64,000 nucleotides of DNA from Macrostomum lignano (Eukaryota), in assembly GCA_002269645.1 (NCBI GenBank), contig NIVC01000853.1, forward strand, positions 62,001-126,000, read 5' to 3'. Below, piece after piece: positions 33,701 through 36,700 of this stretch (positions are counted from its first letter, which is position 1; every line of letters begins with the position of its first letter). The notes under the pieces are model-generated. The model was not told where the DNA came from. It did not search any database and saw only the letters and a list, made by a program, of their open reading frames with translations. The translations under genes were made by a program, and so were the position numbers.

Positions 33701-36700
33701 ACGCATTAGTATATATCCAGCATACTAAAACTATTTGGTTTGTAACCAAATTTGGTTTGGTTTGTTTAGGTGAAACAGCCGGCATACCTTTTCAAAAACT
33801 GCACTTTAAATTGAAAATGAACTGCACAAAGAATAGCCTTTAGTTTTTTGTTACTTGAAAATTCCAATTATATTTCCGGTTTCCCTTGGAGCTGCCAGCT
33901 TCTCTTTGGGTTGCCAGTTTCTTTTTAGGTTGTCAGTTTCACTTTGGGTTATCAGTCTCTCTTTGGGTTGTCAGCTTCTCTTTGGGTTGCCAGCTTCTCT
34001 TTGGGTTGTCAGTCTCTCTTTGGGTTGTCAGTCTCTCTTTGGGTTGTCAGTCTCTCTTTGGGTTGTCAGTCTCTCTTTGGGTTGTCAGTTTCTTTTTAGG
34101 TTGTCAGTTTCTCTTTGGGTTGTCAGTTTCTCTTTGGGTTGTCAGTTTCTCTTTGGGTTGTCAGTCTCTATTTGGGTTGCCAGCTTCTCTGTGGGTTGTC
34201 AGTCTCTCTTTGGGTTGTCAGTTTCTTTTTAGGTTGTCAGTTTCTCTTTGGGTTGTCAGTTTCTCTTTGGGTTGTCAGTCTCTCTTTGGGTTGTCAGTTT
34301 CTCTTTGGGTTGTCAGTTTCTCTTTGGGTTGTCAGTCTCTATTTGGGTTGCCAGCTTCTCTGTGGGTTGTCAGGTTCTCTTTCGGTTGTCAACTTCTCTC
34401 TGTCTCTTTGGGTTGTCAGTTTTGCTTGGGGTTGCCATTTTTCCTTGGGGTTGCCATTTTTCCGTGGGGTTGCGAGTTTCCTTCAAAACGGTCATAACCT
34501 TTCACTGAGATGCAAATTTAAGCTAGAGAAAAACCAGGTGAGAGCTAAAAAAAATTCACCTGTTCACACAGTCACTGTTCCATAGCATGAAACTAACGTT
34601 AAAAAAGTGGTCAAATCTAACGCGGAAATTACTGCAAATCAACGATCAGCAAGAGTTAGAGAAGAAAAATCAAAGCGTTAAAAAAACAATCAACTAAGCC
34701 ACCAGTCGCTCAGCATTCTACTTATAGTATTATATATATGAAAAGAAACTGTGCCCAATATTTTGTGAGCATTGTGCGCTCAAAAGAAAAAAACTGGTTC
34801 ATAGGAGAGCAGAAAGGAATTTGGATAGAAAAAGCGGATGATGGCTTCAATATAAAACATCTCAGGGGGGTTGATGCAGAATCTGGCAAACTTTCTCAAA
34901 CTGTGTAAGCAAGAAAACACGCAGCGGTAGTTAAGATTCCAGTCGGCTATTGTAAGGAAAAAACTAATGCAAAAAATGAACTCTGGTTATGAATGATGCA
35001 TTGAGAGAGAGGCCACTGATTGCTGAAGCCTGACTGAACATATGGTAATCCGTTCCTGCCGGTGGGATCAGCAGGACTTGGCCTTAGACTATTAAACTGT
35101 AAGCTGCATATTAGCTAGACTGATAACGTATTGATTACTTAATCTGCGCCAATATACCTTTGCCAAAGCAATAGAGCCCTTGTCTATGGTAGCAAGACTG
35201 GTACAGCGGCTCTGTTTTACCCCTAGATTTCCATTTAGACATGATAGTCTCAAGCAGTGAGGACGAGAGCATTGTTTAGCAATTTGACGATCATTATTCA
35301 CATTTTTAATGCAGAACAATCCATTATAGGTTTTGTCAGCCTAACTGAGAATAAAGCCATCCAAAGTGAGAATTCTGCCCACGCCGACTGCGAAGGGCCC
35401 GGCCGCGTGCAGCCTTAGTCTATGGGCCATAGACTATAAAGGACAAGCAAAGTGTGTTCCTGTTTCCGTTATTCCGTTCAAGCTATTGGCTAGTCATATG
35501 GCTCAGAAGGTATAAAAATAAAAGAATACGACACATAGACCAATCGATTCTCACATTGGATGGCTTTTTATCACTTTGCTTGTCCTTTACAGTCCACGGC
35601 CCACAGACCAAGGCTGCACGCAGCCAGGCCCTTCGCAGTCAGCGTAGGCAGGATTCTCACCCTGGATGGCTCCATTCTCAGTTAAGCTGACAAAAGCAAT
35701 ACTACAAACAATGCATTGTCTGTAGGATCGTCAAACAGAAAAACAGACAAACAATGCTTCATTTGCAGCTGCAAGAGACGGTCGAACGAATGCCAATACC
35801 CACTTAGAAAATTCGAAGCCTATTGCTAATTAAATTTCTAGTTCAACTGAATATTCAAGGTTAGACTTGGAATGAGAGAAAAATCGTATCCTAGTTTAAC
35901 TGACTGTTAAAATTAGTGCATTTTAACAAAGCTAAACTTATATTGTTTATTCTGCTATTTCTAGGGCTATTTATAACCAAAATAAATAATCATCCAACTA
36001 AATCTTGCCAAAATGATATTCACTAATATTGAAAAAATAATTGTGCGCTACTAACCGCAGTAGATAAATTCGGGTATAAACTCTTAAATTTGCGCGACGC
36101 TATTTAAATTAAACAACTATTCCGTCTTGCTAGCCTTCCCACTTACCTGATTGGCGGTACAGTGAAATTTGCTCAAATAAATTGCATTACACAGCTGTAA
36201 CACGTGTTTGGGTTTAATTAAATACTTATGTACCACCATTGCTACCATACACAAAGCTCCATTACTCTGACAAACATATATTGGATTGTATTCAATGCGT
36301 GTAGGCCCAAATGGGCGGCAAAAATGCTACATTAGTCAAGGACAGCTCTGCTGACCATCCGGCAGCTTTGAAGTTAACAGTATAGGAAATTTCCCAAGCT
36401 ATTATTTCAGACAAGGTGTCACTGCGCAAGCCCTGTGCCCAAAATTTACATGGTCAGTACATTAAACTGTGTGTCAACAGAATCTAACTCACGTACTTAT
36501 ATATAATACACATGAAAAATAAGCGAGTAAGCCAAATGTCGATGGATCCGTTCCGCTGAACTGTTATAAAAGTTACAGATAGATGATTATTAACGCTATT
36601 GATACAATACACCTACCTGCTGGGAGGCGCAGCTTGGGTAACAAAGGTGCGCCTTTGAGTAGGGGGAAAAAGGGCAAATTCAAGCAAGTCGCCACCCTTT

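Follow-up and report, generated by a model that had tools for sequence, protein, structure and literature searches.

We analysed a stretch of 64,000 nucleotides (nt) from the flatworm Macrostomum lignano (assembly GCA_002269645.1, contig NIVC01000853.1, positions 62,001 to 126,000 of the forward strand), called here the window. It contains a hairpin-forming inverted repeat at positions 35331-35695. The arms of this repeat diverge by 12%, exclusively through transitions in their 124-nt core, and almost all of these changes leave the arms paired in an RNA copied from the minus strand. As a signature at a single fold-back element, this pattern is real and statistically robust. A constraint at the RNA level on the minus-strand duplex seems to be its simplest reading, and the locus is a credible candidate for a long-hairpin, double-stranded RNA (dsRNA) locus.

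The arms, of 124 nt each, align without gaps (Table 1). The left arm and the reverse-complemented right arm show 15 differences. They consist of nine A/G, five C/T and one T/C, with no transversions. On the minus strand, the arms form 109 Watson-Crick pairs, 14 G:U pairs and one A·C mismatch. On the plus strand, the 109 Watson-Crick pairs are accompanied by one G:U pair and 14 A·C mismatches. The predicted RNA folds of 35320-35706 differ likewise. The minus strand reaches -262 kcal/mol (z -24.9) and the plus strand -218 kcal/mol (z -21.8); both lie more than 20 standard deviations below shuffled sequences, and the minus-strand fold is better by 44 kcal/mol. In silico, the stem of 124-130 bp with its 117-nt loop is an extended duplex of at least ~100 bp. 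The long, nearly perfect intramolecular dsRNA that characterizes substrates of the editing enzyme ADAR is also present, in silico only, in the predicted fold. In a gapped local alignment, as with a repeat finder, the repeat reaches 35325-35454 / 35572-35701 (130 nt, 87%). These six outer bases add two differences, both transversions, at the outer end.

Part of the arm is found a third time in the loop. This partial copy is complementary at 20 of 21 positions to 35353-35373, and that pairing excludes the inner stem. No part of the stem has diverged more than the right-arm segment duplicated in this copy: its 22 bp hold 5 of the 15 differences. Just outside the right arm, the palindrome at 35702-35725 forms a separate small stem-loop in the predicted 571-nt minus-strand fold. 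It overlaps the right copy of a flanking direct repeat, and its single internal mismatch is a G:U pair on the minus strand. A first-pass annotation of this DNA had already described the hairpin. Its arm coordinates and its counts of differences are exact, the third copy (35546-35569) and the left-arm palindrome (35417-35435) are present, and the strand-specific G:U pattern that it reported is genuine. The folding of both strands, which it had proposed as a check, favours the minus strand.

We considered whether chance or a local mutation bias could produce such a pattern. The neutral yardstick was formed by 27 of the 36 tandem arrays in the window, where each distinct variant was counted once against the array consensus. 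The whole window gave 118 transitions and 87 transversions (42% transversions). In terms of polarity, plus-strand G>A and T>C changes, which are of the minus-strand G:U type, reached 64, against 54 for A>G and C>T (1.2:1). Around the hairpin, at 29-40.5 kb, the counts were 10 and 4 in the same direction (2.5:1), plus 10 transversions. This is the region of a minus-strand gene (29000-40500), and elsewhere the array variants are distributed 54:50. A modest local lean in the direction of the hairpin may therefore exist. It may reflect a transcription-associated asymmetry; the numbers are too small to decide.

Compared with these spectra, the hairpin is exceptional. The probability that 15 of 15 differences are transitions is ~2.5e-4 to 3e-4. 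The probability that at least 14 of 15 are of the minus-strand G:U type is 9e-7 with the window spectrum and 4e-5 with the spectrum of 29-40.5 kb; with the 10:4 polarity alone, it is 0.045. The unique DNA at 34.6-37.4 kb without the arms was also inspected. On the plus strand, A+C exceeds G+T by only 3.4%, and the AT and GC skews of these unique flanks run opposite ways. Because this keto/amino skew is small and of mixed signs, there seems to be no strong long-term strand-specific deamination pressure. Comparisons near the stem and outside it comprise the repeat ends (two transversions), the third copy (two), the flanking direct repeat (one) and the small palindrome. Together they show five transversions and one transition, versus 15 transitions and no transversions in the stem. 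Local mutation bias and chance fail to explain the pattern, since the background spectrum has many transversions and a weak polarity. The look-elsewhere correction is negligible, because a scan of all 64 kb found this hairpin as the sole inverted repeat of at least 40 nt. The two-sided binomial p of 0.001 given in the first-pass annotation for the 14:1 split is arithmetically right, and the local background strengthens the pattern. The same annotation admitted that a local asymmetric mutation rate could account for the bias; array variants with ratios of 1.2:1 to 2.5:1 and 42% transversions do not account for it.

The palindrome and the third copy serve as internal outgroups to orient the changes. 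The palindrome polarises four differences (35417, 35422, 35429 and 35431) as minus-strand A-to-G changes in the right arm. In that arm, it survives only in G:U-paired form on the minus strand. Most parsimoniously, both arms would have started with the perfect palindrome, and four A-to-G changes would then have occurred in the right arm. At 35353, 35354 and 35364, the third copy has the state of the left arm; at 35365 it is unique, and at 35374, the one exceptional site, it has that of the right arm. The two differences of its own are both transversions. At least seven changes are thus polarised as minus-strand A-to-G in the right arm. The left arm has only one polarised change, at 35374, which is a minus-strand G-to-A that breaks the pairing.

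Three of the five C/T differences present CpG in the left arm versus TpG in the right arm. The observed/expected ratio in the window is 0.57 for CpG and 1.05 for GpC. Because CpG is depleted, these sites are most simply read as C-to-U in the right arm. It means that three further right-arm changes are probably CpG-to-TpG. The CpG value hints at CpG hypermutability in the window, and the composition of the tandem arrays may contribute to it. Flatworms are generally thought to have little DNA methylation.

Polarity is established for about half of the changes. From these, one arm appears almost frozen, and the other seems to change about 10 times as often, keeping the minus-strand duplex paired. 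A conserved arm facing an arm in which only pairing is kept resembles the asymmetry of guide and passenger strands. We also considered a C-to-T hypermutation like that of APOBEC or of repeat-induced point mutation. It was ruled out, because the palindrome and the third copy make at least seven changes A-to-G.

The sequence context of the changes was compared with that of the unchanged adenosines, taking all 14 G:U sites as minus-strand A-to-G. The ancestral 5' neighbours of the 14 sites are U (6), A (4) and C (4), with no G; the 3' neighbours are G (8), A (3) and U (3), with no C. Unchanged adenosines have A (15), C (14), G (12) and U (10) on the 5' side, and A (16), G (15), C (11) and U (9) on the 3' side. 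By permutation, the lack of 5' G has a p of 0.04, the surplus of 3' G one of 0.057, and the two together one of 0.004. The neighbours at the 14 sites rank in the order that ADAR prefers. Moreover, the A-to-G changes include AA-to-GG doublets and a cluster of five in 20 nt. This ADAR-like context is suggestive, not proof: it was examined post hoc and partly overlaps the CpG explanation. Neither the context nor the concentration of A-to-G changes in one arm had been noticed in the first-pass annotation.

The element is bordered by direct repeats of 11 nt, identical at 10 of 11 positions, which the first-pass annotation missed. An equally good flanking repeat appears in 0.65% of flank shuffles (p 0.0065, with 18 x 22 end positions allowed). 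Two caveats apply. A related motif, ACAAACAATGC, recurs at 35747, 43 nt further on, and the extreme ends of the element align only with a 5-nt indel. Because a repeat resembling a target-site duplication flanks the unit, a start as a fold-back insertion, or one resembling a MITE (miniature inverted-repeat transposable element), is probable. The element has the structure of MITEs and foldbacks: it is small, it ends in inverted repeats, and it lacks coding capacity (only short open reading frames in 35326-35706). A recognisable superfamily terminal motif was not found in it. An assembly artefact of the type of a long-read palindrome chimera was ruled out by the 117-nt unique loop, the short arms and the transition-only divergence.

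Table 1. Features of the fold-back element and of the neighbouring minus-strand gene (positions in the window).
Feature	Position	Strand	Remarks
Whole fold-back element, 381 bp	35326..35706	-	two arms, spacer and ragged outer ends; limits from the flanking direct repeat
Left flanking direct repeat AACAATCCATT	35315..35325		candidate target-site duplication, abuts the element
Left arm	35331..35454	-	3' arm of the minus-strand RNA; pairs with 35572-35695; sequence-conserved arm
Palindrome, perfect 9+1+9, AGTCTATGG-G-CCATAGACT	35417..35435		inside the left arm; internal outgroup
Spacer/loop, 117 nt	35455..35571	-	no Rfam match
Third partial copy	35546..35569		direct repeat of the outer right arm; internal outgroup; possible competing pairing
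Right arm	35572..35695	-	5' arm of the minus-strand RNA; diverged yet still paired
Small flanking palindrome CTACAAACAAT-GC-ATTGTCTGTAG	35702..35725		24 nt, just outside the right arm
Right flanking direct repeat AACAATGCATT	35707..35717		candidate target-site duplication, abuts the element
Possible downstream exon, half of a dsRNA-binding domain (dsRBD)	31496..31711	-	Pfam dsrm E 0.018-0.025, below the curated cut-off
Probable second exon (QPAGVL...)	36930..37031	-	AG acceptor precedes; frame closes within ~100 nt
Upstream coding exon	39245..40487	-	arginine/serine-rich and polyglutamine N-terminus, dsRBD-like C-terminus; ends at a consensus donor, CAG/GTGAGT

The gene beside the hairpin lies on the minus strand. 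Its open reading frame at 39192-40487 matches UniRef A0A1I8F774 of Macrostomum lignano, named only 'DRBM domain-containing protein', with identity at each of the 107 aligned residues. Ten residues encoded in frame by the genomic exon (VIKNPKHFLQ) are absent from the UniRef model, where automatic annotation seems to have introduced a spurious mini-intron. The dsRBD signals of the exon 39245-40487 are sub-threshold (Pfam dsrm E 0.09; PDB DGCR8 dsRBD E 0.08). At its C-terminus, the UniRef model reads 'GQPAGVLN', which matches 'QPAGVLK' at 37028-37011. Both possible frames stop near 36.93 kb, after the last database-supported exon start at ~37031. Minus-strand hexamers resembling poly(A) signals, ATTAAA at 36218 and AATAAA at 35951, are found just upstream of the hairpin. 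The hairpin is thus on the strand of the gene and follows its last supported exon by 1.2 kb and the AATAAA by 245 nt.

If the possible exon at 31496-31711 belongs to the same gene, the hairpin would be intronic. The downstream open reading frames, including this one, have no match among database proteins that would show the gene to extend beyond the hairpin. At 31380-31555 there are 5.5 copies of a 32-bp unit with 100% matches, and this array overlaps the low-coordinate end of the reading frame 31496-31711. The hairpin had been placed in an intron of an NKRF-like gene by the first-pass annotation. We could sustain neither term. The stops near 36.93 kb and the two hexamers precede the hairpin, which may lie either in an intron or just past the 3' end. 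Of the NKRF domains (dsRBD, G-patch and R3H), only the sub-threshold dsRBD signals appear; the G-patch motif is absent in every frame of the window, and R3H was not searched separately. The identification of the host gene as DGCR8/Pasha was considered and set aside. The best PDB matches are DGCR8 dsRBDs, with E 0.08-0.9, and no WW or Rhed-like region is evident.

Our tentative reading is that the minus strand produces a long hairpin RNA with its duplex under constraint, of the hairpin RNA (hpRNA) or the ADAR-substrate type. We consider it plausible, still short of probable. Selection on the minus-strand duplex would explain why the spectrum contains only transitions, why it is polarised by strand and why the non-stem comparisons differ from it. 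The element would have arrived as a MITE-like or foldback insertion near the gene for the dsRBD protein. Transcription of the minus strand, as an intron or as 3' read-through, would then yield a duplex of 124-130 bp with a 117-nt loop. The arms would once have been identical. Later, almost only duplex-preserving changes would have been accepted (on the minus strand, A:U to G:U and G:C to G:U), nearly all in the 5' (right) arm, with the sequence of the 3' (left) arm kept. Dicer would cut the duplex into endo-siRNAs (small interfering RNAs of endogenous origin), and one arm would supply the guide strands. The same duplex would probably be edited by ADAR.

Purifying selection would account for the asymmetry between the arms, and it is the only explanation offered for it. 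The excess of A-to-G could be compatible with selection too, as changing A:U to G:U should cost less stability than changing G:C to G:U. Likewise, A-to-G might be nearly neutral at edited sites. That selection, and not a special mutation process, is acting, and that the RNA is processed into small RNAs, we infer. The functional dsRNA under selection proposed in the first-pass annotation keeps one of its parts, the constraint on the minus-strand duplex; for the function, no target was found in the window or among predicted proteins.

Several observations weigh against a constrained hairpin RNA. The polarity of the changes is read from two short internal outgroups. Moreover, the polarised changes are mostly A-to-G, though C-to-T is ~2x commoner per site in the background. 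The comparison of the arms covers a single locus, without an orthologue or paralogue that could reveal compensatory change. Minus-strand transcription is deduced from the orientation of the gene alone, and the mature transcript does not include the hairpin if the AATAAA at 35951 marks the end of the gene. With regard to targets in cis, a scan allowing up to three mismatches found none of the element's 21-mers elsewhere in the window. The six frames of 35290-35740 gave no match at E <=10 among ~5.8 billion proteins. Finally, an editing-type process could write the pattern without selection on function.

Because the six-frame protein search was empty, the arms cannot be recognised as a piece of any annotated coding gene. 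The other searches were also negative. No second copy of the element was found in the 64-kb window (self-blast, blastn). Viral and metagenome contigs were scanned for the exact most-conserved 29-31 nt of the arm, with 0 matches. Exact-protein look-ups for paralogous or allelic contigs, made with the protein P0001, the 78-residue reading frame of the hairpin and the 431-residue reading frame of the exon, returned none on record. An Rfam scan of 30-41 kb shows nothing overlapping the hairpin at E <=1. A microRNA (miRNA) precursor or a known RNA family was ruled out by this result and by the stem of 124 bp, versus ~30-35 bp. An autoregulatory element, another suggestion of the first-pass annotation, has no sequence support, as neither a 21-mer target in the window nor a blastn or protein match was found.

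The pattern could instead be an imprint of editing or deamination. In this case, the fold-back would be neutral, and a strand-specific, transition-only mutation process would have written the 14 G:U sites. The process might be an ADAR-type A-to-I hyper-editing of the minus-strand RNA that returned to DNA by retroposition or RNA-templated repair. Alternatively, A and C might be deaminated on the non-template DNA strand of a hairpin-stabilised R-loop. At least seven of the eight polarisable changes are minus-strand A-to-G, as this explanation needs, and the ADAR-like neighbours with their joint p of 0.004, the AA-to-GG doublets and the cluster also speak for it. So do the 10:4 lean of the gene-region array variants and the flanking direct repeat, which marks the unit as inserted. 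ADARs are active in flatworms, specifically in planarians (PMC8797187). However, the position of the direct repeats, right at the ends of the inverted repeat, agrees with DNA transposition and fits poorly the retroposition of an RNA; no A-rich tail exists on either strand. Editing is not heritable without an RNA-to-DNA step. A deamination of the non-template strand should mark the loop and the flanks, but those show a weak mixed skew and mostly transversions. The three C/T sites that are CpG/TpG are more naturally C-to-T than A-to-G. In addition, an imprint leaves unexplained the ~7-10 changes in one arm versus one in the other. We consider it a possible explanation, on the unlikely side.

The evidence for pairing constraint is shared by another alternative, a structural cis-element of the host pre-mRNA. 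It would bind a dsRNA-binding protein, possibly the dsRBD protein of the adjacent gene. In a variant of this idea, looping out would affect splicing or the choice of the 3' end, with the third copy as the competing pairing. The place of the hairpin, on the strand of the gene and shortly past its last supported exon and the AATAAA, agrees with such a role. The complementarity of the third copy, which excludes the inner stem, and the high divergence of the right-arm segment matching it agree as well. However, among the systems compared there is no precedent for a 124-bp perfect-type duplex as a switch of splicing or 3' ends. Neither an exon nor an RNA family is recognisable in the loop, the assignment of a dsRBD to the gene is weak too, and the sequence conservation of one arm is not explained. 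The probability of a cis-element seems low to us. Lower still, and very small, is that of an ordinary decaying MITE or foldback without meaning at the RNA level, in which chance and a modest transcription-associated asymmetry produced the pattern. Its structure is the appropriate one (terminal inverted repeats of ~125-130 bp, small size, no open reading frame, 11-nt flanking direct repeat), and long inverted repeats are very common, with 6.6 million in the 424 genomes of LIRBase (PMC8728187). The 10:4 lean of the gene region alone would also give the P(>=14/15) of 0.045 mentioned above. On the other hand, the lack of transversions (p ~3e-4) does not depend on polarity, the joint probability stays at 4e-5 under the most favourable local spectrum, and only one inverted repeat was available for picking in the window. 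Because of these joint statistics, chance with ordinary MITE decay is effectively excluded.

The rest of the window is rich in tandem repeats. It contains 36 mini- and microsatellite arrays with periods of 2-44 bp, many of 20-100 copies, that occupy ~41% of the window, several of them within introns. One is the microsatellite (CT)52 at 32002-32106. Dispersed repeats were not found in the 64 kb. A gene of the GOLPH3 (GPP34) family presents two exons on the plus strand, 48394-48918 and 49860-50471 (Pfam E 3e-24 and 1.5e-21), and its intron is almost all a 22-bp tandem array (48923-50011). A gene with a cyclic-nucleotide-binding domain is located at 57840-60421 on the plus strand (Pfam E 3e-9); a 21-bp array of 75 copies (58431-60008) separates its open reading frames. 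Finally, an exon of the PIG-N (GPI ethanolamine-phosphate transferase) family is found at 1625-2152 on the minus strand (Pfam E 7e-9).

In Drosophila, the long hairpin RNAs that supply RNAi have been studied well. Flatworms have Dicer-2, flatworm-specific Argonautes and ADARs, and Macrostomum lignano also has RNA-dependent RNA polymerases (PMC5594548, PMC8797187). A study of the small RNAs of this species reported miRNAs and PIWI-interacting RNAs, and hairpin siRNAs are not described in it (PMC4604429). We found no literature on hpRNAs, MITEs or RNA editing in Macrostomum lignano, and no descriptions of flatworm hpRNAs. Conservation of pairing that is visible from sequence alone offers a cheap and specific entry point to the question of flatworm hpRNAs. 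The recent genome duplication of Macrostomum lignano provides a natural outgroup for telling selection apart from an imprint of editing. A mutational origin of the pattern would make it a rare case of germline DNA carrying an ADAR-like signature. Should neither selection nor a mutational imprint apply, the locus adds one fold-back element to a genome very rich in repeats.

A fuller form of the hairpin RNA reading can be proposed. The locus might be an endo-siRNA locus of the hpRNA type, derived from a fold-back transposon, with a frozen guide arm, a passenger arm drifting through G:U, and edits hard-wired in the genome. It would then be the first flatworm locus of this type to be recognised, beside a gene for a dsRBD protein and with many A-to-G changes at ADAR-preferred sites. 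If so, editing and the genomic hard-wiring of edits would have jointly shaped a Dicer substrate. This whole combination appears unlikely.

Compared with known systems, the locus shares features with several of them. Mutator-like MITEs have target-site duplications of 9-11 bp, and Drosophila FB elements of 9 bp. As in MITEs and foldbacks, the hairpin element is small (381 bp) and non-coding, with ~125-130 bp terminal inverted repeats and an 11-nt flanking repeat matching at 10 of 11 positions. Unlike in a neutral MITE, the differences are transition-only and strand-specific, and there is a single copy in 64 kb. The unusual feature is the substitution pattern only, as eukaryotic genomes contain long inverted repeats in very large numbers (LIRBase, PMC8728187).

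Inverted repeats edited by ADAR, such as the human inverted Alu pairs (PMC8797187), form a long, nearly perfect intramolecular duplex, and so does the predicted hairpin. Likewise, it is probably inside or beside a transcript of RNA polymerase II, and presents genomic A/G differences in ADAR-like contexts. However, these differences are in DNA between the two arms, whereas in hyper-editing they are found between RNA and DNA. With regard to the guide-star asymmetry of miRNAs and siRNAs, the likeness is that one arm is conserved and the other varies but pairs through G:U. A miRNA precursor would have a far shorter stem, and the Rfam scan at E <=1 gave no match.

The hallmarks of Drosophila hpRNAs are Dicer-dependent siRNAs of ~21 nt from one strand of the arms, a primary transcript that accumulates without Dicer, and arms that originate from a target gene or transposon and run antisense to it (PMC10317233). 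Named loci with Dicer-2-dependent endo-siRNAs are hp-CG4068, hp-CG18854 and Nmy/Tmy (PMC10317233). The statement of the first-pass annotation that G:U-rich stems typify these loci finds no echo in that paper, where 'wobble' and 'G-U' are absent. The Macrostomum hairpin differs from them by a stem at the short end of the range and by its flatworm host, and it is known here only as a sequence. Like them, it has a potential single-strand transcript, a duplex of >100 bp and a modest loop, with a strand-specific conservation of pairing and one arm better conserved than the other.

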